A stretch of DNA of 11,658 bases, from the sequence record MK054218.1. One strand, 5' to 3'. Below the pieces are notes generated by a model. That model ran no database searches. It had not been told where the DNA came from and was given only the letters and a program-made list of their open reading frames with translations. The translations under genes and the position numbers were made by a program. Every line of letters begins with the position of its first letter. The stretch's first letter is position 1. This document shows positions 1 through 11,658 of this stretch, piece by piece.

Positions 1-237
<237 letters not shown>

Positions 238-254
238 TTCGCCTCAAGTATTAT

Positions 255-288
255 GGTTGCCAAAACATGTTTATAAGCATTGGCAACC
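255..288 (-). promoter_or_regulatory. Putative int promoter: TATA-like (C)TTATAAA flanked by a 9-bp inverted repeat
   Basis: GGTTGCCAA (255-263) and TTGGCAACC (280-288) enclose the TATA-like element at 270-277, about 33 nt upstream of the int ATG. Confidence 0.55.
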
Positions 289-539
289 CGTTAATTTTTG
301 CCGTGATTTGCGACGAATTGAAAGAAGACGGCAAAAAGTCCTCGGAAGTAATAATATATGATAATCTTGTTTCTAACGCGTTCAAGTGGACTGTACTTTA
401 CGAGAAGGCAATTATTAAGGTTAAGCAGGCAATAGGTAGGGCAATAAGGGGGCCTCAAGATTCCGCAACAATCTACCTAATTGACAAACGTTTCACATAC
501 AAGAACGTAATGGAGAAGATGGGCTTAGAGGTGGCCTAA
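267..539 (+). pseudogene. C-terminal remnant of a Rad3/XPD/DinG-family SF2 helicase
   Basis: AIIKVKQAIGRAIRGPQDSATIYLIDKRF matches the motif VI region of XPD/DinG helicases (QxxGRxIRxxxDxxxxxLxDxRF). No Walker A, DEAH or Fe-S region is present. The ORF-track 5' extension (45-266) is antisense to int. Confidence 0.8.
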
Positions 540-1133
540 ATGGTTGATAGGGAAACGCTTAGGAGGATTGTCCAAGAAAAATTAAAGAAAAATAAAGACG
601 GAAATAATAACTCAGCGACACAAAATAATTCAAAAAATGAAGTGTCGTTTGATAAAAATTCTCCGGAAGTTCAGAAAGGGTATAATGAAAATGTGTCGTT
701 TGTGTCGCCCAATTTAGTAAGCGACACACGAGAAAAATTCAAAAGCGACACAAACGACACAAATTCCTCTATCTCTCCAAATACTTCCGGAGAATTTTTA
801 GCAGAAGAGGAGAAAGAAATTGAAGACGGAAATAATAACTCAGCGACACAAAATAATTCAAAAAATGAAGTGTCGTTTGATAAAAATTCTCCGGAAGTTC
901 AGACAGAGAAAACCCAAAATGTTACGTTTGTTACGCACAATTTAGATGGCGTAACAAGAGAGAAATTCAAAAGCGTAACAAACGTAACAAATCCCCCTAT
1001 CTCTTCCCAAACTTCCGGAGAATTTAGCTCAGAAGAGAGTGAAAAAATTCAAAAAAGAATTAGTTGTATAGGTTCATTTTCGGCTTTTTCTTTTCTTCTT
1101 TCAAAAGCCTTTCAAAAAATTGCCTTAATATAG
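540..1133 (+). CDS. Low-complexity repeat protein (two 76-aa repeats) carrying an iteron-like DNA array; the C-terminal ~25 aa are probably read-through into the antisense of the next gene
   Basis: ATG directly follows the helicase-remnant stop, with RBS GAGGTGG. The protein repeat mirrors a 228-bp DNA duplication. Confidence 0.5.
   Translation: MVDRETLRRIVQEKLKKNKDGNNNSATQNNSKNEVSFDKNSPEVQKGYNENVSFVSPNLVSDTREKFKSDTNDTNSSISPNTSGEFLAEEEKEIEDGNNNSATQNNSKNEVSFDKNSPEVQTEKTQNVTFVTHNLDGVTREKFKSVTNVTNPPISSQTSGEFSSEESEKIQKRISCIGSFSAFSFLLSKAFQKIALI
595..1050 (+). repeat. Tandem 228-bp duplication (595-822 / 823-1050) with nested inverted repeats
   Basis: 595-675 is identical to 823-903 (81 bp). The remaining 147 bp align without gaps, with 39 mismatches by hand count. 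Inverted repeats: 653-670/783-800 (18 bp), 692-708/745-761 (17 bp), 884-898/1011-1025 (15 bp), 920-936/973-989 (17 bp). Confidence 0.97.
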
Positions 1134-1299
1134 GTACTTTTTCGATAGACAGTTCTTCTTCGGGTTCCATGTATTCCGTATTGTTTTCCTCATTAATATT
1201 TTCCTCTTTCACTATGTACGTAAAGCAGACAGTGACCCATACCCCGTTAGCTAGCCTAAATTCACGTGCTTTTTTCGAATAACTAGCTATTCTTCCCAA
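1060..1299 (-). CDS. Hypothetical protein, 79 aa (early/T5-like orientation); start uncertain (TTG)
   Basis: Purine-rich E/K-rich coding strand. It overlaps the tail of an upstream truncated minus-strand frame, as expected in an operon. Confidence 0.55.
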   Translation of the reverse strand: MGRIASYSKKAREFRLANGVWVTVCFTYIVKEENINEENNTEYMEPEEELSIEKVPILRQFFERLLKEEKKKPKMNLYN

Positions 1300-1343
1300 T
1301 CTTCTTCCGCCTCACTCAACTCCTCATCAATACTCAAAGTTTT
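1287..1343 (-). pseudogene. Acidic C-terminal stub of a lost gene (KTLSIDEELSEAEEDWEE*)
   Basis: Short minus-strand frame with coding-like acidic composition and no suitable start. It begins abruptly where the Cas4-like remnant begins on the other strand. Confidence 0.35.
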
Positions 1344-1346
1344 CTA

Positions 1347-1856
1347 ATGAGACATAACGGTAAAATAAAACAGAATTTACAAACTACAATGAAGATGCAC
1401 ATAGGTTCAGGTCTTCATATGCGTTTGCAATCAATACTTAGAAAGCATGGCTTTGAGGTTGAAAAGAGGGTTGAACGGAAGACGGCTTTGGGCTTTAACA
1501 TTGTAGGCAAAGTTGATGTTTATGACAAAGAAGAGAACACAATATACGAGTTGAAGTATACTCATCATGATAAGCTGGATAACGTTAGGCTCAACAACTA
1601 CCTCAGACAACTTAACTATTACATTGAAATGGCTAACGCTATGGCGGGCTATTTAATAATCGTGCATGCAGATGGTAGGGTGGAAGAGATAAAGAGGGAT
1701 TGGAGTGAGACAGACCTAGAGAGAAGGGCTAACGCTTTCGGGATTTCAGTTGAGGAAAACATCTTACCGCCGAGAAAGGCTAAGCCAGATAGCGAATGTA
1801 TGGAATGCCCCTTCTATAGCTTTTGTTGGAGGGATAGGAATGGAGTCAGGCAGTAA
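1347..1856 (+). CDS. Viral Cas4-like RecB/PD-(D/E)XK nuclease, probably N-terminally truncated
   Basis: GxxxH (GSGLH), GKVD, ELK, QLNYY and a C-terminal CMECPFYSFC cluster. The N-terminal fourth Fe-S cysteine is absent, both in the ORF and in the in-frame sequence just upstream. Confidence 0.88.
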   Translation: MRHNGKIKQNLQTTMKMHIGSGLHMRLQSILRKHGFEVEKRVERKTALGFNIVGKVDVYDKEENTIYELKYTHHDKLDNVRLNNYLRQLNYYIEMANAMAGYLIIVHADGRVEEIKRDWSETDLERRANAFGISVEENILPPRKAKPDSECMECPFYSFCWRDRNGVRQ

Positions 1857-2217
1857 AACGCACCTGAGGAGTAACCATAAGGGGATTACGATTCACGTGA
1901 CTTTGGAAGAACTTGAACGCTATCATTCTCTGACGCCGGAACAGAAAAGAATAATTAGGGCTATTGTTAAAGCGTTAATCCATAACCCCCAGTTGTTAGA
2001 TGAAAGCGGTTATCTCTATAAGTTACTGACAAGTAAAGCAGTATCGCCTTACGTTTGTCCCCTTTGCTTAATGCCATTTTCTTCATCAGTTAGTCTGAAG
2101 CAACACATCCGTTATACGGAACACGCAAAGACTTGTCCCATATGCAAAAAGGAGTTTAGAAACACTGATTCAACCCTAGACCATGTTTGCAAAAAACATA
2201 ATATCTGCGTTAGTTAG
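1840..2217 (+). CDS. Tandem C2H2 zinc-finger DNA-binding protein (SSV1 B129 homolog), 125 aa
   Basis: CPLCLMPFSSSVSLKQHIRYTEH and CPICKKEFRNTDSTLDHVCKKH. ATG 1840 follows GGAGGGATAGGA and is preferred over the track start at 1750. Confidence 0.92.
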   Translation: MESGSKTHLRSNHKGITIHVTLEELERYHSLTPEQKRIIRAIVKALIHNPQLLDESGYLYKLLTSKAVSPYVCPLCLMPFSSSVSLKQHIRYTEHAKTCPICKKEFRNTDSTLDHVCKKHNICVS

Positions 2218-2553
2218 GTGATGTTGATGGATAGGCTAAAGGTCTTATGGCTCATCTTCATTTTAGGTAACTTATTTGATTATGGTGCAACACTTCTTTT
2301 TTCCTATCTTGGAGTGCTTTATATGGATCGCAATGTTTTCATAGGATCTAACACAAGTTTCTTAGACGTTCTGATAACCTTAACCGGTGAGAAGTTGTTA
2401 TTATTAAGTGGAGTTTATTGGTTTACTAAGTTATTCGATTATCTAAAAATCAGTAAGTATAAGTGGATGGGCTTATTGCCTTTTGCAATAATAACTATCC
2501 TTATAGTATGTATACTCGTAATAGCCATTTTACTTTTTTACTTAACTTCTTAG
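2218..2553 (+). CDS. Small integral membrane protein (3 predicted TM, DUF5658-like N-L-x-D-x-x-x-T pattern); true start may be ATG 2227
   Basis: Hydrophobic segments and GNLFDYGAT. RBS GGTGA at 2216-2221. Confidence 0.75.
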   Translation: MMLMDRLKVLWLIFILGNLFDYGATLLFSYLGVLYMDRNVFIGSNTSFLDVLITLTGEKLLLLSGVYWFTKLFDYLKISKYKWMGLLPFAIITILIVCILVIAILLFYLTS

Positions 2554-2567
2554 GCCCTTTATAAAGT
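2551..2567 (+). promoter_or_regulatory. BRE/TATA promoter TAGGCCCTTTATAAAGT (T3-like), copy 1 of 3
   Basis: TTTATAAA lies about 25 nt upstream of the leaderless ATG 2591. Identical 17-mer at 4223 and 8188. Confidence 0.88.
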
Positions 2568-2590
2568 TACACTTTCCTTTTTCGCTTACA

Positions 2591-3511
2591 ATGAGGAAGT
2601 ACCTACTAATGGGAGTTTCGCTATTCCTACTATCTCTAATCTTTCTAAACGCATCTGCGCTAACGGCAAGCCAACTAGGTGCAAACTATACGGAAAGTTC
2701 GATCGGTACTAAATTCGTGACTGCTATTGCATATTCTGATGAATATCAAGGCATCGGCCCATGTCCTCCGTATTATGGCTATTGGCCTAACACAATTATC
2801 AGTGCCAATGAGAATATCTATCTGCCAAATAGTTTCACATACTATCCATCTGTTACGGGAACGGATCAGATAATAGTTGGAGTAGGGATAGGTAGTAACG
2901 GAGTTTATATGCCTACCTATCCCGCCTGGAATCTCAACGATCTTCCCAACGAGACAATATACGCCGGGTTCATGTTCACAGTCAAACCTGATAATTCATA
3001 CTCTGTTTCATATATAGCCTTCGGTACTGGTCCAAATCTTTCCTATATAAACATTATTAATGGGAACGTGCCGAAAGGTTCTATAAGCTGGTTATATGTC
3101 CAAGAATACTATAATCAAGGTAAACAAACATTAACAATTACATGGATAGTGCACTATACAAACAATTCACAGTTCACTTATACCACGATACTATCCTATG
3201 TTGTATATTCATGGTCCGCTTTGTCATTTGTGGCTACAAATTCGATTGGTACAAACGAGTTTAACCAATTACCATTCGTAAATGGTGGTTCTGTTAGTTT
3301 CTGGTTCTCATACTTATCTAATGGCCAAATATATGGTGGGCCTGGGACTCCTGCATCGGGGACATCTATTTATGCAGAGGTATATTCATTGTCAAAAACA
3401 TCTTACGCAAACTCTATGCTTTCTAATGTGACTAGCGCAAGTGGAGTTACCGGAAGCTGGTCCTATACATTTTCCTTCTCTGAGAACGGGCAAACTACCT
3501 ACGGGCTATAA
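2591..3511 (+). CDS. Secreted beta-rich S/T/Y/N/G-rich protein, 306 aa (positional analog of SSV1 A291); candidate viral toxin
   Basis: Signal peptide MRKYLLMGVSLFLLSLIFLNASA, several N-x-S/T sequons, no C-terminal membrane anchor, own strong promoter. Confidence 0.8.
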   Translation: MRKYLLMGVSLFLLSLIFLNASALTASQLGANYTESSIGTKFVTAIAYSDEYQGIGPCPPYYGYWPNTIISANENIYLPNSFTYYPSVTGTDQIIVGVGIGSNGVYMPTYPAWNLNDLPNETIYAGFMFTVKPDNSYSVSYIAFGTGPNLSYINIINGNVPKGSISWLYVQEYYNQGKQTLTITWIVHYTNNSQFTYTTILSYVVYSWSALSFVATNSIGTNEFNQLPFVNGGSVSFWFSYLSNGQIYGGPGTPASGTSIYAEVYSLSKTSYANSMLSNVTSASGVTGSWSYTFSFSENGQTTYGL

Positions 3512-3512
3512 A

Positions 3513-3522
3513 AATTTATATG
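3513..3522 (+). promoter_or_regulatory. Putative TATA box (AATTTATATG) for a leaderless transcript of ORF 3545 (Tx-like)
   Basis: TTTATAT at 3515-3521, about 24 nt before ATG 3545. Confidence 0.55.
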
Positions 3523-3544
3523 TTTCAAGGTAATTCTTTTTTTT

Positions 3545-3814
3545 ATGGATAAGAAACTAAAGGCTGAACTATTGTTCTTAATACCTTTTACTTTTTGTTG
3601 GTTTATCCTTTTTTGGGTCTACAGTTATAGTATATTTACCATAATTTTTTTCATACCTTTTATGTCTCTATCTTACATAGGCTTTCTAAGACTCTTAAAG
3701 AACGGATATAAAAACTTCCCTTACTATAGAACTATAATGATAACATTAGGTTTGATTACGACAATATCCACGATAATTGTAATATACATTTTTACTCATC
3801 CTCTTCCAATATGA
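3545..3814 (+). CDS. Small membrane protein, 89 aa, about 3 TM helices
   Basis: Three F/I/L-rich segments separated by basic loops; very AT-rich DNA. Confidence 0.75.
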   Translation: MDKKLKAELLFLIPFTFCWFILFWVYSYSIFTIIFFIPFMSLSYIGFLRLLKNGYKNFPYYRTIMITLGLITTISTIIVIYIFTHPLPI

Positions 3815-3859
3815 TTAATGGTGGTCTAATGTCGGTACTACATATGTGTAAGGAATAGC

Positions 3860-3883
3860 TTTTTTACTTTTTTCTTTTTTTTT
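3860..3883 (+). terminator. Oligo-T tract; putative archaeal terminator or promoter-proximal element
   Basis: TTTTTTACTTTTTTCTTTTTTTTT between ORFs 3545 and 3890. Confidence 0.45.
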
Positions 3884-3889
3884 AAAAAC

Positions 3890-4225
3890 ATGGAATTCCT
3901 TTCACTTCTAATTTTCGTTTCCGGAATAATCGTGGCTTTCTTAACTCTTTATTTCTCACCGGATTTTGGAAGGGTAAAACCAAATAAAAGAAGCCTATCG
4001 ACCATATTTCTATCAATAGCCCTTACGGGAATAGGTTTATGGCTCTATTCCATCGACCATCCAACATATATAGCACAACCATATGAAGGATCGCCAGAAG
4101 GGCTTTATTATGGCCCGTCACCTACTATACATGTTCCCCCACCATGGTACGCTAACTTATGGCCATTCATAATCGCAATAGGCTTAAGTATACTTATAAT
4201 TCCAATGATTAGACCCAAAAATTAG
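3890..4225 (+). CDS. Small membrane protein, 111 aa, 3 TM with a Pro/Tyr-rich loop
   Basis: Hydrophobic segments at the N-terminus, middle and C-terminus; loop QPYEGSPEGLYYGPSPTIHVPPPWY. Confidence 0.78.
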   Translation: MEFLSLLIFVSGIIVAFLTLYFSPDFGRVKPNKRSLSTIFLSIALTGIGLWLYSIDHPTYIAQPYEGSPEGLYYGPSPTIHVPPPWYANLWPFIIAIGLSILIIPMIRPKN

Positions 4226-4239
4226 GCCCTTTATAAAGT
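4223..4239 (+). promoter_or_regulatory. BRE/TATA promoter TAGGCCCTTTATAAAGT for the VP4 operon, copy 2 of 3
   Basis: Identical 17-mer, 22 nt before ATG 4261. Confidence 0.88.
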
Positions 4240-4260
4240 CATTCAATTTTTTATCGCTTA

Positions 4261-6627
4261 ATGAAGTGGGGACTATTATTCGCTATTTTCTTTATATCTC
4301 TTTTTTCTCTCAACTCCTTAGCTTTACTTATTGGAGGAGGGCCTAATAATAGCGGTGCGGGAGTTTATACTCAAACTATAACGGTAAATGGAGGAACAGT
4401 AAGCACGAAAGTTAATGGTTCAACGCTCTCTAATGCACCTTGGCTTAACCCAACTTACGTTTCGATATACAACACTTACTACCTCCAAGTTTTGCCGAAT
4501 CAAGAATATATTAGTAATAACGTATCTCTTTCTCTTTCATCATCACAAATCGCTCTAAACGTCACATGGTTGCTAGCTTCATCTAGCAATACCGGATCCT
4601 ACGGTTCAATCGCCATAGGCTACGGTGTAAATTTCCCTTCAGGCTTTACGACTAGCTATGCACCCGCATTACCTTACGCCTCCGATGGGATTGTGGTTTA
4701 TCTGGAAAAAGGGAGTTTCCCAACGTATAGAATATTTGTATACTTTGACGGTGTGAAACAGTTAAACGTGTCTGTGGGCTCAATCAGTGTTGGGCAACAA
4801 ATAGGTTTAGGGTTCTGGTACTTACCCGCTTCAAACCAACTTTACGTTTATTACTATAACGGTACTCTAAAGACTTTTTCAATAATACCGGGCCTATCGT
4901 TGAATACCGTAAATAGTAATTATGTTATTGACGCTCAGAATATTGGGCCGGGTTTTGGGTACGGTCAGTGGGTGATAATGCGTTATCAATATTTTACACA
5001 AGTTACGGCACAACTGACTATTAGTTATTTCGCATTATCGTATAACATCTATCATTTCTTAATGGCCTATGCGGGTGCGGGGAATCCCGTAAACATTTCA
5101 GGTGCATTATATAGCATATCGGGCATAGTTTCACAGAAAAACTTTACAATAACGGGTATACAACAAGGCTTAGCATACACCTTTAACATTTTAGGGAAGT
5201 CAAACGGATTATATTTACTTTACACGGGGCCAATCGAAGGTAACCCACCAACATGGTACGTAAACGTAACCATAGGGCTTCAAATCGTTACATCTCAAGT
5301 AACGATAAACTACAACCTAACTATACCCGTAATTGTTGAGGGCTATGCACTATATCCTAGCGTCAATTTGCCTAGCGGAACTTATCTAAGCGGGCAAACA
5401 ATCAGTTTTACACTGACCAACTTCGTAGGTTATCCCTCAAATCTAGGTTATTATACTGCAGTATCAGAGCGGGCTAACGTATCAATAAACGGTGTTACGT
5501 ACCCGATACCCTATAGTTTTACGCCTATAGTCCAAGTACCTACTACTTATTACTACACAGTAATCGTAACTGAAGGTCCAATATCAATGATAGATTATAG
5601 TGGTAGTTTCACAGTATTGCCCGCACAGAGTTACCCCGTGTTATTCGTTACTTCTTATCCTAGAATCGGGATATTAGGGCAAACGATAACGATAACGTTC
5701 CAATTCACTTACAATAGTCCCGTCTCGAATGTAACACAATCCGCATTAACGCAAACTACTAGCACTTTCGCATTTACTTATGCATCTATAATAACGTCGT
5801 CATCATTGATACAATTCAAGGCGTATTGGCTTAATGCAAGTGATGGTTTAATAATCATTACGCAAAGTCAGAATTTCTTAATCCCCTTCAACTATGTAGG
5901 GCTAACATGGTACAATAATAGCGTTAATACAGTGCAGATTAACGTTATTAATAACGCGTTACAATTAACGATTAACGGTGGTACGCTTAACATAGCTAAC
6001 TCATCTAAAGTGATAGGCTTAGGCTTCTACTACGGTGCGGGGAAACTTGTACTGAACTGGTTCTTCGTTAGCGGTATCGTTTTACAAAGTGCTACGGCTA
6101 ACCAAGCATATATAATATTGATCGGGACTAACCCATCAACATTGACACAATATGTAACGGGTTACACTAACGCTAGCGGTTTCGGAAACGTAACGCTAAA
6201 ACTATCCTATAGTCCTTATGAGCTTATTGACGTATATTGGTACGGCGTTACATATCAGATACTAAACATTAGCGTTTCAAATACTACTACAGTAAGCAGC
6301 ACCACCACAGTGAATACCACTACTCTTAACTACAACTACACTAAGCCGTTTAGTAATAACATTGCCCCTAACTCCTCACTATATAACTTCTCTCAATACC
6401 AACCATGGGCGGAAATCATCGGGATTGTGGTTACTTTACTTATCGCGTTACTAGGTTGGAAATTCGGCGGTAGTGCGGGTGCATCGGGTGGTGCGGTTAT
6501 GGGGCTAATCGCCACTGCATATTTGGGGCTATTACCATGGTACATCTTTTATGTCTTTGTACTTGGCATAGCGCTACTGTTAGCGAAAACGTTTGTGGAT
6601 AGGTTTATGGGGAGGGAGGAAGAATGA
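4261..6627 (+). CDS. vp4: Virion tail/receptor-binding glycoprotein VP4 (SSV1 C792 homolog), 788 aa
   Basis: Signal peptide, long beta-rich N/T/S/Y body with many sequons, Thr-rich linker, C-terminal TM helices; size and position match. Confidence 0.92.
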
Positions 6628-6866
6628 CGGACGCAATTTCCCTAGCTTTACAAACCGGTTTAGGGCCGGTAATTGCGGTCGTTATTATCATAGGAATGAT
6701 GGGACTAACATACAAGATGGCGGGCAAAGTACCGGCGATTCTTGTAGGTATAGCCTCAACTTTCACCCTAACTTTCATGAATTTCTTACCGCTTTTTTGG
6801 GGCGTTGCGATCATTTTGGGTCTGATAGCCGGGTTAATCTTAGGAGGTGGTAGGGATGGGGACTAA
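6624..6866 (+). CDS. Small membrane protein (SSV1 B78 homolog), 80 aa
   Basis: ATGA overlap with the VP4 stop; hydrophobic; syntenic. Confidence 0.88.
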
Positions 6867-7356
6867 GCTAATAGTATACGTCCTATTGTTTGACGTCTTT
6901 CTAGCGTTAATGGTAGGTGCTTACGGCGGTATAACGCCACCGTCAATTCCACCGATACCTTCATATAGTTTTGACCAAGCTTTAGCGTCATCAATTGTAT
7001 GGACTGTGGGGTGGCCACCCATTACGTTATGGGGGCCCGTGACACTTATTCCGCCGTTTTCCATTTTAGGGGCTAACTTTCCGGGACTAACTTTACCGGG
7101 TGTAACGATACCGGGTGTAACATTGTTTAGTATATCGTTTTCATGGTTGGCCCCAATCCTTTACCTGATAGGTTGGCTAACGTGGATGTTTCAGACAACC
7201 GATAGTGTTTTAGGGTATCTAATATCTATATTCACTTCTTCTATAGGATTGTTAGCGAATGTACCGACAGTAGGGCCGTTTTTGACGGCTTTCGTTTTGA
7301 TTGTCAATTTCATCCTCATTTGGGAAGTGGTGAAATTGATAAGGGGTGGGCCATGA
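6856..7356 (+). CDS. Membrane protein (SSV1 C166 homolog), 166 aa from ATG 6856
   Basis: [33 protein letters not shown]; Pro-rich region; RBS GGAGGTGG; syntenic. Confidence 0.9.
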   Translation: MGTKLIVYVLLFDVFLALMVGAYGGITPPSIPPIPSYSFDQALASSIVWTVGWPPITLWGPVTLIPPFSILGANFPGLTLPGVTIPGVTLFSISFSWLAPILYLIGWLTWMFQTTDSVLGYLISIFTSSIGLLANVPTVGPFLTAFVLIVNFILIWEVVKLIRGGP

Positions 7357-7697
7357 CTTATAACGCTAATGAGATTAGGGCTAAGATACTAAGGCGTAAA
7401 ATCTTAGAGCTTATTGTGGAAAACTACGTACTCTCTGCTTCTCTCATCTCTCACGCACTGCTTTTGAGCTATGCAACAGTGCTAAGACACCTCAGAATCC
7501 TTAACGAAGAAGGATACATAGAGTTGTACAAAGAAGGTAGGACGTTATATGCTAAAATTAAAGAGAACTCTAAACAAATTCAGATTCTGAATTCAGAACT
7601 GGAGGGGTTTAAAAAGCTTAGCGACAAGCCCCTATTGACCAAGTATGAGCCTAGTACTATTGCAAAGACCAAAGCTAAGAAAGGGCGAAGCAACTAA
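7353..7697 (+). CDS. Winged-helix (ArsR-like) DNA-binding protein (SSV1 B115 homolog), 114 aa
   Basis: RRKILELI...[39 protein letters not shown] wHTH pattern; ATGA overlap with the C166 stop. Confidence 0.9.
7601..7616 (+). promoter_or_regulatory. Capsid operon promoter (T1/T2-like) embedded in the B115 3' end
   Basis: GGAGGGG-TTTAAAAA (TATA at 7608-7615), about 30 nt upstream of the VP1 ATG. Confidence 0.7.
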
Positions 7698-7908
7698 CAT
7701 AGGAGCAATTTTAGGGCTATTCATCTTTATACTTATAGGCATAGTACTATTGCCCGTCATCGTTAGCCAAGTAAATAACTTGACTTCCGGTACTGCACCT
7801 AGCGTAACCGGCACAAACGCCACACTCTTACAACTAGTCCCACTGTTCTATATCCTAGTCTTAATCATAGTCCCCGCCGTAGTGGCGTACAAGATTTACA
7901 AAGAGTAA
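7645..7908 (+). CDS. vp1: Major capsid protein VP1 precursor, 87 aa (14-aa leader, mature protein EATNIG...)
   Basis: KG|[73 protein letters not shown]; two TM helices and two sequons. An in-frame TGA at 7636 bounds the ORF. Confidence 0.97.
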
Positions 7909-8128
7909 AGGTGTGAGGGATGGAAATCAGTTTAAAGCAAATAATTTTTTTGACTATCTTCATCGTTTTAGGTATAGCGTTATTATCGCCAATTGTTAGT
8001 TACGTAAATTTGCTAACCACACCGTCTTTCACAACTGTTTCAGGTACTGTGACGCAAACTAATCCTAACCCGCAATACGTAGGAAGCTCAAACGCACCCA
8101 TCTTACAACTAGTCCCACTGTTCTATAT
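7826..8128 (+). repeat. 28-bp exact direct repeat shared by vp1 (7826-7853) and vp3 (8101-8128)
   Basis: TCTTACAACTAGTCCCACTGTTCTATAT at both sites, 275 bp apart. Confidence 0.95.
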
Positions 8129-8186
8129 ACTTGTACTGATAGTTGTACCGGCGGTTGTAGCGTATAGGATATACAAGTCTGACTGA
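7920..8186 (+). CDS. vp3: Minor capsid protein VP3, 88 aa
   Basis: VP1 paralog sharing [25 protein letters not shown]; RBS GGTGTGAGGG. Confidence 0.95.
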
Positions 8187-8187
8187 A

Positions 8188-8204
8188 TAGGCCCTTTATA
8201 AAGT
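8188..8204 (+). promoter_or_regulatory. BRE/TATA promoter TAGGCCCTTTATAAAGT (T9-like), copy 3 of 3
   Basis: Identical 17-mer, about 20 nt before ATG 8225. Confidence 0.88.
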
Positions 8205-8224
8205 CATAATTTTTTCCTCTTTTG

Positions 8225-8473
8225 ATGAGTGCGTTAGGGGATGTAATCTACATTCTAGGCATTCTAATCCCTCTTCTAGGTTTAATCGTAAGGAACTATC
8301 TTATCGATTTATTAGGCTTTATCATGGGTACTATGGGCTTTCTTGTCTTTGTACAGAACTATACGGACATAACGTTCTCGGCGTCAAACTTTTATTTAGC
8401 CCTTCTGCCGTTAGCGTTTGGACTCATGGACTTTGCGTTTTTCTTCAATTGGCTCAAGGAGGAAAGAATATGA
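8225..8473 (+). CDS. Membrane protein (SSV1 A82 homolog), 82 aa
   Basis: MSALGDVIYILGILIPLLGLIVRNYL; 3 hydrophobic segments; first gene of the T9-like operon. Confidence 0.9.
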   Translation: MSALGDVIYILGILIPLLGLIVRNYLIDLLGFIMGTMGFLVFVQNYTDITFSASNFYLALLPLAFGLMDFAFFFNWLKEERI

Positions 8474-8727
8474 TGAGGTGGATGTCAAATGGTCTTGTTA
8501 GTCCCAAAAATATACGCCGAAATAGCCCTAGGTTTCGATTCAATTATGCTCATTACTGCTTTGCTATTCAGAAAGCCAAAGCCCAAGAAAAAACAATCAA
8601 AAGAACAATTGACGAATGGAAAACTTCTAGGGTACTATCTCGTAGGGGGTTCGGCATTAGCCTTACTCGTAGGGCATTATGCCTTCTACACCACTTACGT
8701 AACCTATTTTACGGGATTATTGATTGA
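8473..8727 (+). CDS. Overlapping basic ORF (SSV1 C84-like), 84 aa; expression uncertain
   Basis: Alternative frame overlapping the A92-like gene; start is coupled to the A82 stop. Confidence 0.4.
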   Translation: MRWMSNGLVSPKNIRRNSPRFRFNYAHYCFAIQKAKAQEKTIKRTIDEWKTSRVLSRRGFGISLTRRALCLLHHLRNLFYGIID

Positions 8728-8773
8728 CGCTTTCGTATTTTATCTCGGTTTGGAGGTGTTAAGGCGTGTCTGA
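8489..8773 (+). CDS. Membrane protein (SSV1 A92 homolog), 94 aa
   Basis: RBS GAGGTG 8 nt upstream; TM segments around a Lys-rich loop; stop overlaps the next start. Confidence 0.82.
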   Translation: MVLLVPKIYAEIALGFDSIMLITALLFRKPKPKKKQSKEQLTNGKLLGYYLVGGSALALLVGHYAFYTTYVTYFTGLLIDAFVFYLGLEVLRRV

Positions 8774-9605
8774 CGGTAAGTTAGTTTCCGCATGGGAGGA
8801 AGAGCTTAAGAAAGCTCAGACACTTGATGAGCTAAAGCAAAAATATGAAGAAGTACAAAAGCAGATAGCGGATGGTAAAACGCTAAAGAGATTATACAAA
8901 GTTTATGAGAAAAGGCAAACTGAATTAATGCTACAACAATACAAACAATTGAAAGCGGAATTAGCTCAAAGAAAGAAGGTAAAGAAGAAGGATAAGGCGG
9001 ATATCAGAGTTAAAGTAGTTAAGAAGTGGATTAATTCGCGTCTGTTTACTGCGGAACATTACGTAGCAATGTTACAACAATCAAAGGACGGCTTGCAATT
9101 GTTGTTTATGAGGAAAGCGAAACTGGTGGAAAACCAGGGTTATCTAATGCTAGAGAACCGCAAACTAAGAAAGAGTTGGGTCTTAAACGGTGAACCTTTG
9201 CTACTTGAAAAGAACAAATTCCCGTTTGGGAAAAAGTTTGTGGCCGTTCATTTCGTTTTGCCTGATTATCCTTATACTTTAGATTTGGTAGTAGATGAGA
9301 AGATTAAACAATTAACGCTTAAGACGCTTAACGCACCACAGGTGATCCACAGTATTATCCGTACTAAGTTCTTTGAAGCACTTGCACGGGTAGGCAGTGG
9401 TATCGATTATACTATGCTTATTATAGGCGTTATCATGGGTATCGGGATTGGAGTTGCGATAGGCTTTGGGATTGCAAACGCTAACCTGAGTCACTTACTT
9501 GCTCAACATGTGACAAATAGCACAGTAACGCATACTACTACCACACCGCCTACTACAACTACCAGTCCTTCATTCACTATCCCGGCAAATAGTACAAAGG
9601 GGTGA
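8766..9605 (+). CDS. Core protein (SSV1 B277 homolog), 279 aa: N-terminal coiled coil, C-terminal TM, Thr/Pro tail
   Basis: MSDGKLVSAWEEELKKAQTL...; GTG start with GGAGGTG RBS; syntenic. Confidence 0.92.
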   Translation: MSDGKLVSAWEEELKKAQTLDELKQKYEEVQKQIADGKTLKRLYKVYEKRQTELMLQQYKQLKAELAQRKKVKKKDKADIRVKVVKKWINSRLFTAEHYVAMLQQSKDGLQLLFMRKAKLVENQGYLMLENRKLRKSWVLNGEPLLLEKNKFPFGKKFVAVHFVLPDYPYTLDLVVDEKIKQLTLKTLNAPQVIHSIIRTKFFEALARVGSGIDYTMLIIGVIMGIGIGVAIGFGIANANLSHLLAQHVTNSTVTHTTTTPPTTTTSPSFTIPANSTKG

Positions 9606-9611
9606 ACTGAG

Positions 9612-10070
9612 ATGGCTAAGAAGGCTCAGACGGTTGAAGAATTGAAGAAAGAAAATGAAGAGTTAAAGAACAAGTTGGCAAAGTTAGAGGCGTTAATAAA
9701 CAATCAAGAAGAGGAAGATGAAGAGTTACAAGAGATAGAGAACCCGTATACGGTAACTAATAGAACTATTTCAGAGTTAGTTAGCCCTAAGGATACGATG
9801 TTCTACCTTTCCGGTAACCAGATATCGCTTATACTTACGGCGTTTGAGTTTGCTAAACTTCCTAGTTATTTCGGTGAGGAACCGGTAACGGAACTTGCCG
9901 AGTTTGCCCACAAATTAAAGCATTATCTGGTTAGCAAGGGCGGAAGAGGGCGTAGAGATATACTCAGAGTGCTAAGAGTCAGTTCAGGCCAAACTAGGGA
10001 AAACGTAAACAAGTCTCTCATAAGTAAGATATTGAAGGGGGCGGATATGGATGAAGGGGAAGAAGGTTAA
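9612..10070 (+). CDS. Core protein (SSV1 A154 homolog), 152 aa
   Basis: N-terminal coiled coil and acidic stretch, SKGGRGRRDILRVL motif; directly upstream of the ATPase. Confidence 0.9.
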   Translation: MAKKAQTVEELKKENEELKNKLAKLEALINNQEEEDEELQEIENPYTVTNRTISELVSPKDTMFYLSGNQISLILTAFEFAKLPSYFGEEPVTELAEFAHKLKHYLVSKGGRGRRDILRVLRVSSGQTRENVNKSLISKILKGADMDEGEEG

Positions 10071-10788
10071 GCATATTAATACGGGACAATTAGGCAAGAT
10101 GGTTATCAATGAAATGAAGGATAACGGTTTCCAGAGCATTTTGGTATTTGGCAAACAAGGTGCGGGTAAAACTACGTATGCCCTAAAAGTTGGGACACGA
10201 ATCCTACAGTACTTGTATCCGGATTTGACGGAACATGACGCATGGTGGCAAGCCTATAATTTGATGGTTTTCACATTGGATGAGGCGATAGAAAAGCTCA
10301 TGAGTGTAGTGGAAATGCATGAAAAGGGTAACGTAAACTATAGGTTACCGTTCCTGATCATTGATGACGCTTCAATAGACTTAATCAAGTATGCGTGGCG
10401 TGAAGAACAAAACATTCAGTTTGCAAAACTGAACAACTTAGCAAGGACTTGGAGTGTGGCACTTATCTTTACTACTCCTTGGATAGAGGACATTCAAAAA
10501 TTCTTGAGGGAAAAAGCATGGATAGTAGTTCAAGTGCAAAAGTACGGCTCATCTAAAAACGGCGATTATCCTAAGTCAATAGCATGGATTTACAAGAGGA
10601 CTATTAAACTGATTGACGGGGAATTTAAGGGTAAATATGTGGAAAAATACTACGATATCTTTAGGAGGGAAATGCCGAATGATCTTTACGAAGAGTACAT
10701 AAAGAGAAGAGACGGAGTGATGAAGAGGATAGCTAATGAGGTACTCGCTATAATGCGTGAAAAGTCCTCAAAACTACCGAGTACCTAA
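10051..10788 (+). CDS. P-loop ATPase (SSV1 B251 positional homolog; described as DnaA-like), 245 aa
   Basis: Walker A GKQGAGKT and Walker B FLIIDD; lies between the A154 homolog and int. Confidence 0.9.
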   Translation: MKGKKVKHINTGQLGKMVINEMKDNGFQSILVFGKQGAGKTTYALKVGTRILQYLYPDLTEHDAWWQAYNLMVFTLDEAIEKLMSVVEMHEKGNVNYRLPFLIIDDASIDLIKYAWREEQNIQFAKLNNLARTWSVALIFTTPWIEDIQKFLREKAWIVVQVQKYGSSKNGDYPKSIAWIYKRTIKLIDGEFKGKYVEKYYDIFRREMPNDLYEEYIKRRDGVMKRIANEVLAIMREKSSKLPST

Positions 10789-10828
10789 AGTTGTTTTTCT
10801 TTCAATTCTACGAAAGGTAGGTACTCGG
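10777..10828. terminator. 11-bp inverted repeat enclosing a T-rich tract between the convergent ATPase and int genes
   Basis: CCGAGTACCTA (10777-10787) / TAGGTACTCGG (10818-10828), with TTGTTTTTCTTT in the spacer. Confidence 0.5.
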
Positions 10829-10842
10829 AACGGGTTGAGATT

Positions 10843-11658
10843 TCAAACGTGGGGGACACCCCCACAGTTACTCCTTAACCATTCCGCGTATTTACGATAA
10901 TGTTCTTTCGCAATTCCGAAAAGCGATACGTAATGTTGGGTTAAAATGCGGGTGGGCTTCCTACCCTGGATAAAGTCAATAACGTCTAACGGTATGCCTA
11001 TTTCAGCCATTTTAGACGCGACAAACTTTCTAACATATTTTATCGCAACGGCATCCTTATTTCGTCGCTCAAAATCACTTATCGCCCATTGTGTTATGTC
11101 AACTTTGCGTAACGGCGTTAAGTGGAATACGTAGAAAACGCCTTTATATCCGCGTTGCCATGATAGCGGATAATAGCATAGGAGTGGGGTTGTAGGGGTA
11201 CCCCCTACGTCGCATATATCACGTTCAGGTTCCTTCAAAATGCGGAGTATTTCGCTCAGTCTACTACCGCTCTCTAACGCTAAGCGGTAGACGAGATAGA
11301 CATTTTCGCTATATTCTTTCGCTATTTTGAGCGTGCGTTTGATGTCTTCTAAAGTCGGTATGTAAATATCGGCGTTGGTCTTCTTCACTTTAACGACCTT
11401 TAATATCTTCTCGGCGAAATCGTCACTTATTATTCCGCGTGAGGCTAAGAATTTCGCAAATAGTCTATACGCTTTCTGAGAATTCCTAGTTTCGCGGAAC
11501 GGCTTCGCTAAAGCGGAAACGTACTCTTTAGCCGTCTTTTCTGTTACTTTACGTTCTGTTAGTAACCAATCGTAAAACGCCTTTATGTTGCCTTCCGACG
11601 CATATTGGCGTAAATTGGCAACCAACGCAATTTTACGACGTTCTTCTCTCTCTTTTCC
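10843..11658 (-). CDS. int: Integrase catalytic part, Int(C), SSV-type tyrosine recombinase; frame open to the window end
   Basis: ESGSRLSE (catalytic Arg), KYVRKF (K-x-x-R), QGR, TQHY (catalytic Tyr). The frame extends upstream of the track start 11625 as [12 protein letters not shown]. Confidence 0.97.

Follow-up and report, generated by a model that had tools for sequence, protein, structure and literature searches.

The window analysed here comprises 11,658 nt and matches the record MK054218.1, the provirus M.06.0.8v1.SSV. Its first feature is the N-terminal part of an SSV-type integrase gene (1–237, minus strand; Pfam SSV1_ORF_D-335, E = 1e-32), annotated in GenBank as a CDS that spans the record origin (10843..237). 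Bases 1–44 form the attP core, a 3′ fragment of tRNA-Arg; tRNA-Arg-GCG is the integration site (PMC6452263), and ARAGORN detected no whole tRNA in the window. Adjoining the integrase is a conserved non-coding segment (238–360) containing two hairpins (255–288 and 295–337), with 84–91% identity to SSV1, other SSVs and pSSVi and a DNA fold z-score of −2.95. This segment is kept in all SSVs and is separate from the palindrome described below. It is followed by the C-terminal remnant of a Rad3/XPD-like helicase gene of approximately 53 codons (381–539, plus strand). The match to Pfam Helicase_C_2 (E = 1e-10) and the 90.5% identity to the terminal part of the complete helicase gene of SSV12 show that the helicase remnant listed in the first-pass annotation is real.

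The next gene, ORF540 (540–1133, plus strand, 197 aa), matches PHROG 24043 over residues 1–99 (E = 5e-71). Through tblastn to SSV12, SSV14, ASV1 and SSV7, and an alignment of N-termini, it was identified as the N-terminal stump of a family of ~680-aa P-loop and winged-helix proteins that includes ASV1_C674 and SSV7_B471. In ORF540 the palindrome of this family is doubled, and a new C-terminal tail begins past position ~1050. The gene for the big protein lies directly downstream of the Rad3-like helicase gene, to which it is translationally coupled via a TAAATG overlap, and in full-length relatives the stop codon of the helicase gene is followed by a single unit and then by the conserved big-protein body. 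The two genes belong to an accessory, plasmid-like module of fuselloviruses that is mostly deleted in MK054218.1. The short Mutnovsky proviruses descend from an ancestor in which a deletion took most of the helicase and big-protein genes and spared the palindrome. The module is dispensable, as shown by its loss from the short genomes and by an SSV9 variant that lacks bases 2823–9693 and still gives zones of clearance (PMC6452263).

Two 228-bp units are found within ORF540, unit 1 at 595–822 and unit 2 at 823–1050, which are identical over their first 81 bp and show 39 differences over the next 147. Sequence, alignment and positions confirmed the earlier observation that each unit contains five hexamers in the same places, all CGACAC in unit 1 (693 and 702 on the minus strand, 722, 746 and 755) and all CGTAAC in unit 2 (921 and 930 on the minus strand, 950, 974 and 983). 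The perfect 17-bp inverted repeat described for both units was likewise recovered, as TGTGTCGTTTGTGTCGC/GCGACACAAACGACACA at 692–708/745–761 in unit 1 and as TGTTACGTTTGTTACGC/GCGTAACAAACGTAACA at 920–936/973–989 in unit 2. From unit 1 to unit 2 the encoded peptide changes from S to T on the left arm and from D to V on the right arm, as had been described, and also from D to V at the middle copy. All nine genomic copies of CGACAC in the 11.6-kb genome fall within 616–875; the expected number genome-wide is 2.7, and nine copies were reached in none of 200 shuffles. They include a pair in the upstream part of unit 1 (616–647, with copies at 616–621 on the plus and 642–647 on the minus strand), whose counterpart in unit 2 (844–849, and 870–875 on the minus strand) is unswitched and also reads CGACAC.

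The unit cores (652–800 and 880–1028) each constitute one long imperfect palindrome with an inner and an outer stem, and their DNA folding z-scores are −9.2 and −11.1, respectively. The outer stem, of 15–18 bp, pairs 656–670 with 783–797 in unit 1 (left arm AAATTCTCCGGAAGT, right arm ACTTCCGGAGAATTT) and 884–898 with 1011–1025 in unit 2. The 17-bp repeats form the inner stem. In unit 1, its left arm contains two GTGTCG cores with a 9-bp period and its right arm two CGACAC cores, separated by a 36-nt loop (709–744) that encompasses the third hexamer (722–727) and a short AATTT/AAATT stem. In unit 2, the left arm contains two GTTACG cores and the right arm two CGTAAC cores, on either side of a loop (937–972) with the third copy at 950–955.

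The first-pass annotation had interpreted the two hexamer types as a concerted switch at five sites, which does not hold: just 10 of the 39 differences stem from the hexamers, and unit 2 was probably recombined in. The distal 147 bp of unit 1 are 100% identical to SSV12. For the distal part of unit 2, identity amounts to 75% with SSV12 and to 79% with an allele from a Sulfurisphaera ohwakuensis provirus; the latter is its nearest allele (86% identity over 134 aligned bp) and encodes the same peptide as unit 2, with CGTGAC as the hexamer in all five places. The hexamers were not switched in place; unit 2 is an older, diverged allele, probably brought in by recombination. The apparent switch is a comparison of two old alleles, one SSV12-like and one S. 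ohwakuensis-like, which were probably joined head to tail by unequal recombination at the microhomology AAGAYGRAAAT. Siblings also point to recombination among units. The sibling provirus M.03.0.27 carries a single CGTAAC-type unit, while the sibling M.16.12 carries a single chimeric unit with a broken inner repeat, and in M.04.0.13 the left outer arm is absent. The latter two are natural variants with a damaged palindrome, which is a point against function.

A quasi-palindrome of ~150 bp is present in all 47 close homologs having an N-terminus, which span Alpha- and Betafuselloviruses and proviruses of several genera, and the region in MK054218.1 is an orphaned, doubled copy of this conserved DNA element. 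In intact relatives it occupies the first ~300 bp of the big-protein gene, and at the loci examined it always lies between the Rad3-like helicase gene and the body of the P-loop/winged-helix protein. Its plan is characterized by an outer stem conserved in sequence and a hypervariable inner stem, of which at least 12 types were observed. The inner stem consists of two 6-bp cores, and the loop measures 29–41 nt (34–38 nt in most units) and usually holds a third core. In 11 of 16 units the core-to-core distance amounts to 38 nt, and a period of 9 bp is seen in every unit. The same fold was obtained across eight lineages, with z-scores of −7 to −11. A long dyad with an architecture conserved across relatives, as found here, is characteristic of palindromic (cruciform or hairpin) cis-acting elements of replicons.

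Covariation between the arms was pronounced. In the outer stem, 9 of 15 pairs are invariant across lineages. In the inner helix, 13 of 17 pairs have changed on both sides and none on one side alone; the alignment contains 37 doubly changed cells and no single-sided one, and 94% of the cells are paired versus 31–45% in slid controls. Watson-Crick pairing accounts for 214 of the 225 arm positions in 15 natural units, without a single G:T pair. Complementarity is stricter at hexamer-core positions (179/180) than at spacers (35/45), and the 3-nt spacer is non-complementary in 5 of the 15 units. At the peptide level, codon-compatible complementary arms were identified in 43 of 49 homologs; the remaining six comprise two N-terminally truncated proteins, two whose right arm lies in a different frame and two whose arms are imperfect.

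Since the arms are complementary at these 214 positions without G:T pairs, the constraint acts on the DNA and not on the peptide, which supports the earlier suggestion to this effect. The arm peptides are fully different among the types (VSFVS, VPFAP, ASLAS, VLNVL and others), and the DNA of at least 12 arm types remains complementary. The difference between CGTAAC and CGTGAC is a synonymous change mirrored on both arms. At the homologous locus L262 the repeat is perfect even though its right arm falls in a different reading frame.

A comparable arrangement was observed in pSSVi and two related contigs, where the homologous protein is 30–39% identical and a palindrome of 100–120 bp is located at the 5′ end of its gene (NC_013777.1, 482–600, in pSSVi). 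Besides pSSVi, two of four other distant relatives examined contain such an analogous palindrome. These palindromes share with the fusellovirus element the protein family, the gene position, the conserved outer arms and lineage-specific 9-bp inner repeats. They differ in that their sequence is unrelated, with two to three repeats per arm, a loop of 0–9 nt and spacers that are never complementary, leaving symmetric cores only. The non-complementary spacers, present in 5 of the 15 units and throughout the pSSVi-like palindromes, fit repeated protein sites better than one continuous stem. At three distant homolog loci, SSVK1 A460, MK054236 (the SSV10 record from Norris Geyser Basin) and S. islandicus L.D.8.5, a long palindrome is absent. 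A search of plasmid DNA returned as its sole match 96 bp between the integrase-proximal segment and pSSVi, and the searchable literature contains no description of a palindrome or iteron of a fusellovirus or pSSVi.

The loops provide a further indication of how the element evolves. Five of 14 loops match the loop of the window solely as the reverse complement, and L263 contains both loop orientations inside one molecule. Template switching between inverted repeats has a published signature, namely homogenised arms combined with an inverted spacer (PMC8604942, PMC8794818), and here the arms change jointly without single-sided intermediates and the spacer is inverted. Within each lineage, the copies probably remain alike because template switching between the arms homogenises them in multi-base steps, and the same process would flip the loop. 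The quasi-palindromes of those reports resemble the present one in the multi-base joint change of the arms, the inverted spacer and the location in coding DNA; the element described here differs in its length of ~150 bp, in its two-tiered build and in that all close homologs, and a second subfamily as well, have retained it with an unchanging geometry.

Perfect arms can persist through template switching even where they serve no function, and the palindrome might accordingly be a functionless, self-perpetuating quasi-palindrome tolerated in a disordered linker. We regard this as unlikely, although several observations agree with it: the lack of single-sided intermediates and of G:T pairs, the occurrence of both loop orientations, the frequent duplication or deletion of units and sub-units across loci, the predicted disorder of the encoded peptide and the dispensability of the module. 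Template switching has moreover been published as both maker and keeper of perfect stems (PMC8604942, PMC8794818). However, tolerance does not readily explain why the palindrome is kept in 47 of 47 close homologs with an N-terminus, why the geometry is fixed and the outer stem conserved in sequence, or why the same design recurs with unrelated sequence at the same place in the pSSVi-like subfamily. That all close homologs and a second subfamily have retained the element points to selection atop the mutational process, and selection for arm complementarity may act in addition to template switching.

The distribution of the cores raises the question of a specific binding protein. The motif is confined to the array, at 10–100 times the flanking density in most loci, with up to 26 core copies in ~1 kb in one contig. 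Cores are also found outside the hairpin pairs in both orientations, namely in the loop, upstream and as extra downstream copies. The upstream copies are often unlike the arm cores, as in the infectious virus SSV14, at L022 and L264, and in unit 2. As for candidate binding proteins, the big protein contains a P-loop with weak MCM, RFC and AAA matches and a MarR/TubR-like winged helix (TubR, E = 3.6e-5, TM-score 0.76) with weak structural matches to Orc1 and Apaf-1. The structure model is poor at the P-loop (mean pLDDT 58.7), and the winged-helix assignment alone is firm; these weak matches suggest a replication role of the module proteins. An RHH gene is also present in the module. A partition (centromere-like) site of the parC or tubC kind would be an array of short repeats bound by an RHH or winged-helix protein with a partition NTPase encoded alongside; here, the winged helix resembles TubR and an RHH gene is present, the RHH protein is identical across different cores, and no dedicated ParA or TubZ gene occurs as a constant neighbour. 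With regard to an invertible DNA switch, both loop orientations occur among lineages, and no invertase was found in the module.

The first-pass annotation had proposed two arrays for different cognate proteins. Under this reading, the hexamers would be iterons or operators of a co-evolving specific protein and the two units would represent two incompatibility or immunity types. The many lineage-specific cores in both orientations, including copies unpaired in the hairpin, are consistent with it, as are the stricter complementarity of cores than of spacers, the restriction of symmetry to the cores in pSSVi-like palindromes and the winged helix of the protein family. The proteins themselves argue against it. 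L021 and L022 encode an identical RHH protein, identical big-protein bodies including the winged helix and a nearly identical p125, yet their cores differ (TGGCAC versus TAACAC). Conversely, L021 and L263 both carry TGGCAC in backgrounds that are 58–72% identical, and no shared specific residues above controls were detected in the four proteins compared, namely the 180-aa p180, the helicase, the big protein and p125. The L021/L022 block comparison and the counts of group-specific columns, both from a small sample and hence weak as negative evidence, gave no signal of covariation between partner proteins and hexamers. Neither the frequent mismatch of upstream copies with the arm cores, nor the absence of a second motif cluster within 3–5 kb of the array, nor the arrival of unit 2 by recombination favours a dedicated partner, and this reading is rather improbable. 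Nothing ties the site to B251, B129 or B115, which the first-pass annotation had put forward as binding candidates.

The palindrome is translated through as the N-terminal tail of the big protein, which is predicted to be disordered. A quite improbable extension is that the palindrome serves both as a cis site and as the code for the tail of a protein that acts on it. Contigs with different cores differ in the big protein at its tail and nowhere else. If the extension holds, one template switch would alter both and so generate, all at once, new types with respect to replication, incompatibility or immunity, and the flip/flop loops would be traces of hairpin or cruciform intermediates that arise frequently while the module replicates. 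The strong stem ~110–260 nt past the start codon, in a gene translationally coupled to the helicase gene, could also suggest that the 5′ coding part of the mRNA folds into an RNA hairpin controlling the translation or stability of the big protein. We consider this very improbable: G:U pairs are absent from 225 arm positions in spite of 37 doubly changed cells, loop inversion alters an RNA loop and preserves the DNA structure, the element survives in MK054218.1 where the gene is destroyed, and Rfam returned no family, only generic hairpins far below threshold (33 bits versus a gathering score of 211). Selection on repeated peptides with incidental DNA symmetry is hardly credible, because although the arms of both units encode NVS/NVT and NDT/NVT motifs, N-glycosylation sequons as the basis of the repeat are contradicted by covarying synonymous third-position changes and by the out-of-frame right arm of L262, the peptides differ fully among types that keep arm complementarity, and the tail is predicted to be disordered.

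Origins and other cis-acting replication sites have yet to be mapped in fuselloviruses; in SSV10 a stem-loop of the ‘Tori’ region beside the integrase has been proposed as origin (PMC6080066). The hairpin region at 238–360 is a competing origin candidate to the palindrome. GC skew gave no sharp signal at the palindrome, with a cumulative minimum at ~6.3 kb and a broad maximum in the vicinity of the integrase and the array, and is uninformative here because the genome is transcribed almost wholly in one direction. A scan of viral and genome contigs with the outer-arm 14-mer AAATTCTCCGGAAG gave, among the matches listed, only chance ones in unrelated bacteria. A protein-pattern scan of genome contigs gave no match, though the S. 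ohwakuensis and A. hospitalis genomes hold proviral copies. Matches to sigma-70-type promoter and terminator models, which are ill-suited to archaea, were at chance level.

Several known origins provide points of comparison. Iterons of lambda and plasmids are direct repeats of ~18–22 bp read by a co-evolving initiator domain. As in the lambda ori within the O gene, a repeated site lies here inside the coding linker of a putative initiator, with a helicase gene adjoining; in contrast, the cores measure 6 bp with a 9-bp period in inverted arrays, and the protein body, including the winged helix, does not covary. No helix-phased direct repeats of ~17–22 bp were found, nor any initiator covariation in the contigs compared, and an iteron-type origin in the strict sense appears unlikely. 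Herpes simplex virus oriL and oriS are long palindromic origins associated with a virus-encoded helicase, and they share with the present element a dyad of ~100–150 bp, conserved recognition sequences in the arms, an A+T-rich centre and the helicase. The putative fusellovirus site differs in its hypervariable inner arms, its intragenic position and its location in an accessory module. Geminivirus and circovirus origins rely on an HUH nickase, in which N-terminal residues covary with the iterons, and carry a conserved nonanucleotide in their hairpin loop. Short lineage-specific cores, direct and inverted, at a hairpin, with classes that differ between close relatives, are common to both systems, whereas an HUH protein and a conserved loop nick site are absent here.

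Taken together, the preferred explanation, to which we assign a probability of roughly 0.55, is that the orphaned palindrome is a self-homogenising cis-acting site of the module, possibly an origin or loading site. Judged from its sequence and position, the palindrome would be the DNA site of the module in cis, most likely its origin or a site at which a helicase or initiator is loaded. Sequence-specific contacts would be made by the conserved outer arms, and the variable inner arms would either extrude as a hairpin or cruciform or present a series of symmetric sites. The earlier proposal of an origin within a coding region is retained in part: a cis site in an initiator-like gene is reasonable and is strengthened by the pSSVi-type palindromes, but the module is accessory and mostly deleted here. 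In MK054218.1 the palindrome is probably inert because its proteins are gone, unless a helper supplies them in trans.

For MK054218.1 itself the result is more modest, as the twin units are an orphaned remnant that records recombination between co-circulating viruses. For the family, the element represents an unusually clean natural case of concerted evolution between the arms of an inverted repeat within coding DNA: at least 12 arm types occur without intermediates, and the loop has inverted repeatedly. A recognisable palindrome heading a gene family offers a concrete DNA target for the module of SSV7, ASV1, SSV12 and pSSVi-type elements, and a candidate minimal replicon for vectors.

The record MK054218.1 is the complete genome, recorded as a circle, of Sulfolobus spindle-shaped virus M.06.0.8v1.SSV, an S. 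islandicus provirus from Mutnovsky that is integrated at tRNA-Arg-GCG in a strain carrying a second SSV (PMC6452263). Profile matches located the N-terminal part of the integrase gene, with a tRNA fragment, on the minus strand (1–237) and, together with relatives, the 3'-terminal ~53 codons of a gene for a Rad3-like helicase (381–539). These are followed by ORF540 (540–1133, plus strand), an open frame of 197 codons containing both repeat units. In GenBank, this region is annotated with a minus-strand ORF (559–729) and a shortened plus-strand ORF (702–1133), both running across the palindromic repeats. Comparison with the sequences of relatives favours the 540–1133 frame, and the ORF on the opposite strand probably arose as an artefact, mirroring the palindromic coding sequence. 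Further along, a Cas4-like PD-(D/E)XK nuclease gene (1347–1856) and a B129-type C2H2 zinc-finger gene ending at 2217 form a block (1347–2217) common to most SSVs, and a 15-bp tandem repeat of ~3.2 copies (GGGACTAACTTTACC) is present at 7069–7121 within ORF 6847–7356.

Tandem Repeats Finder detected a 228-bp period spanning 595–1025, corresponding to unit 1 (595–822) and unit 2 (823–1050). The first-pass annotation had described five hexamers per unit, CGACAC in unit 1 and CGTAAC in unit 2; their positions agree with the sequence and the unit alignment, the 17-bp inverted repeats are perfect in both units, and the amino-acid effects of the hexamer change were reproduced by translation. All nine genome copies of CGACAC fall within 616–875 (expectation 2.7; none of 200 shuffles reached nine), and CGTAAC has five copies in 921–988 and eleven others dispersed through the genome. 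Several features had escaped the annotation. The first 81 bp of the two units are identical and carry two extra, unswitched CGACAC copies each, after which 39 of 147 positions differ, the hexamer switch accounting for only 10 of these differences. Moreover, each unit is an imperfect palindrome of ~150 bp in which an outer stem of 15–18 bp accompanies the inner stem.

The twin units are two alleles, rather than the product of a local switch. Over its distal 147 bp, unit 1 matches the free virus SSV12 at every position; the distal part of unit 2 is 75% identical to SSV12. The allele nearest to unit 2, in a Sulfurisphaera ohwakuensis provirus (86% identity over 134 bp), encodes the same peptide (VTFVT ... 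SVTNVT), yet reads CGTGAC at all five sites; the changes, GTT to GTC on the left arm and GTA to GTG on the right, are synonymous and keep the arms complementary. The units join within AAGAYGRAAAT, a motif that lies on both sides of the SSV12 palindrome, so the pair is most simply explained by unequal recombination between two alleles that were co-resident. Judging from sibling provirus sequences, recombination among units is ongoing: M.03.0.27 has a single CGTAAC-type unit, M.16.12 a single chimeric unit (left arm CGACAC-type, right arm CGTAAC-type), and M.04.0.13 a 51-bp deletion between two GTGTCGTTTG repeats.

ORF540 represents an N-terminal remnant of a ~680-aa protein (PHROG 24043), with relatives including ASV1_C674, SSV7_B471 and unnamed proteins of SSV12 and SSV14. 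The SSV7 gene (2661–4712) is annotated in two pieces, B471 and B192, probably owing to a frameshift. In intact viruses, a full-length Rad3-like helicase gene precedes the large gene, which overlaps the helicase stop codon; a ~125-aa protein gene comes after the large gene, and genes for an RHH and a ~180-aa protein are found upstream. The large protein contains a P-loop with weak matches to MCM, RFC and AAA proteins and a MarR/TubR-like winged helix, and its predicted structure weakly resembles Orc1 and Apaf-1. Its precomputed Pfam label is PF27228 (MTBMA_p00010_2nd), a name whose locus tag suggests an origin in a Methanothermobacter plasmid protein. The palindrome-encoded residues 15–93 are predicted to be disordered (pLDDT ~24). 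The helicase and large-protein module is an accessory one, largely lost from the short Mutnovsky genomes, and an SSV9 variant lacking bases 2823–9693, including the helicase gene and A460, still formed zones of clearance (PMC6452263). The palindrome of the present provirus is an orphan site in two allelic copies.

Across the family, the palindrome is universal, yet hypervariable. The same layout was observed in the DNA of 14 other loci. The core is CGACAC in SSV12, SSV14 and two metagenome lineages (one with an AAA/TTT spacer), CGTAAC in unit 2 and SSV7, CGTGAC in S. ohwakuensis, TGGTGC/TGGTAC in ASV1, and TGGTGC, TGGCAC, TAACAC, TGATGC or TGCCAC in other metagenome contigs; cores are restricted to the array at every locus. 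DNA folding gave the same three-tier hairpin in all eight sequences folded (z-scores −7 to −11). In the eight-sequence alignment, 13 of 17 inner-helix pairs showed two-sided change and none one-sided change, with 94% of cells paired versus 31–45% with slid partners. Watson-Crick pairing holds at 214 of the 225 arm positions compared across 15 natural units, G:T pairs are absent, and 10 of the 11 mismatches fall within the 3-nt spacer. At the peptide level, mutually complementary arm codons of at least 12 types were found in 43 of 49 homologs. Two of the six exceptions lack the N-terminus, two have imperfect arms and two have the right arm in a different frame; one of the latter, examined as DNA (L262), has a perfect 16-bp repeat.

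Multi-unit arrays recur among the loci. In contig ERZ27246788 k141_38308 (L263, 5001–6080), a 926-aa homolog spans three units, with TGGCAC appearing 26 times within ~1 kb; downstream are genes for a DNA methylase and a ParA-like protein. An upstream sub-array of 2–3 copies frequently differs in core from the inner arms (SSV14 2730–2765; contigs L264 5060–5135 and L022 3440–3520), which indicates that the two sub-arrays recombine independently; SSV14, with such mismatched copies, is an infectious virus.

The earlier proposal that the constraint acts on DNA and not on the peptide is borne out. Both arms covary synonymously and across reading frames, which speaks against a peptide target, and the lack of G:U-type pairs and the inverted loops speak against an RNA element; no Rfam family matched the palindrome. 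Together, these features place the constraint on double- or single-stranded DNA. The loop measures 29–41 nt, mostly 34–38 nt, and 5 of 14 loops align with that of the window solely when reverse-complemented. L263 combines the two orientations in one molecule: units 1 and 3 face one way and unit 2 the opposite. Multi-base arm homogenisation combined with spacer inversion has been described as the mark left when a polymerase switches template between the arms of an inverted repeat (PMC8604942, PMC8794818). Such switching would change the copies together, producing an apparent concerted switch without five independent events.

The first-pass annotation also read the alleles as two specificities for different cognate proteins. 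Between contigs L021 (TGGCAC) and L022 (TAACAC), identity is ~100% across the RHH gene and again from codon ~110 of the large gene to the 125-aa gene inclusive; it falls to ~75% only in the stretch that starts at the end of the 180-aa gene and takes in the helicase gene and the palindrome. The winged helix, the RHH protein and the 125-aa protein are thereby excluded as partners that determine specificity. TGGCAC is common to L021 and L263, whose backgrounds are 58–72% identical, and their shared-specific residues did not exceed control pairings (helicase, 7 versus 6–10; 180-aa protein, 0 versus 2–4). These comparisons and the mismatched upstream copies lend no support to two specificities, and no covariation of hexamer type with a neighbouring protein was found in what is a low-power test.

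The core of the large protein shares 30–39% identity with the large protein encoded by the integrative plasmid pSSVi and by its relatives. In pSSVi, the 5' end of the homologous gene contains a palindrome (NC_013777.1, 482–600) whose arms are 55 nt long, and palindromes with 56-nt and 49-nt arms occupy the same place in related contigs (L268 1611–1722 and L269 1439–1540, respectively). Their outer arms are conserved (TTGTCAAC...AAAA), and the inner arms consist of 2–3 tandem 9-bp repeats with lineage-specific cores (CCCCGGAWT, CCGCGGATT, CCCCCAAAT). The design and position match those of the fusellovirus palindromes although the sequences are unrelated, which argues for function. The searchable literature holds no description of long palindromes in pSSVi-type genes. 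No such palindrome was found in three distant copies, SSVK1 A460, the SSV10 record (Norris Geyser Basin) and S. islandicus L.D.8.5; the last (1501–3535) has a length that is not a multiple of three and a translation unlike the database protein, and is possibly a provirus copy that has decayed.

No origin has so far been mapped in any SSV, and a stem-loop in the 'Tori' region adjoining the integrase has been put forward as an origin in SSV10 (PMC6080066). The non-coding segment 238–360 beside the integrase gene appears to correspond to this region; conserved counterparts occur in SSV1 (E-54 region), several other SSVs and pSSVi, and the segment contains two hairpins, at 255–288 (GGTTGCCAA/TTGGCAACC) and 295–337 (TTTTTGCCGT/ACGGCAAAAA). 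We consider a specific origin or loading role for the palindrome somewhat less likely than not. It would act in the manner of a palindromic origin, and like the lambda origin within the O gene it lies inside coding sequence; it differs from classical iterons in repeat form and in that no initiator covariation was found. We favour, with a probability of roughly 55% for the statement as a whole, the palindrome as a putative site acting in cis for a plasmid-like replication module. Sequence-specific contacts would fall on the conserved outer arms, and the inner arms would supply a hairpin, cruciform or symmetric sites. Inner-arm sequence could then drift freely as long as the arms remain alike, a likeness that template switching would quickly enforce.
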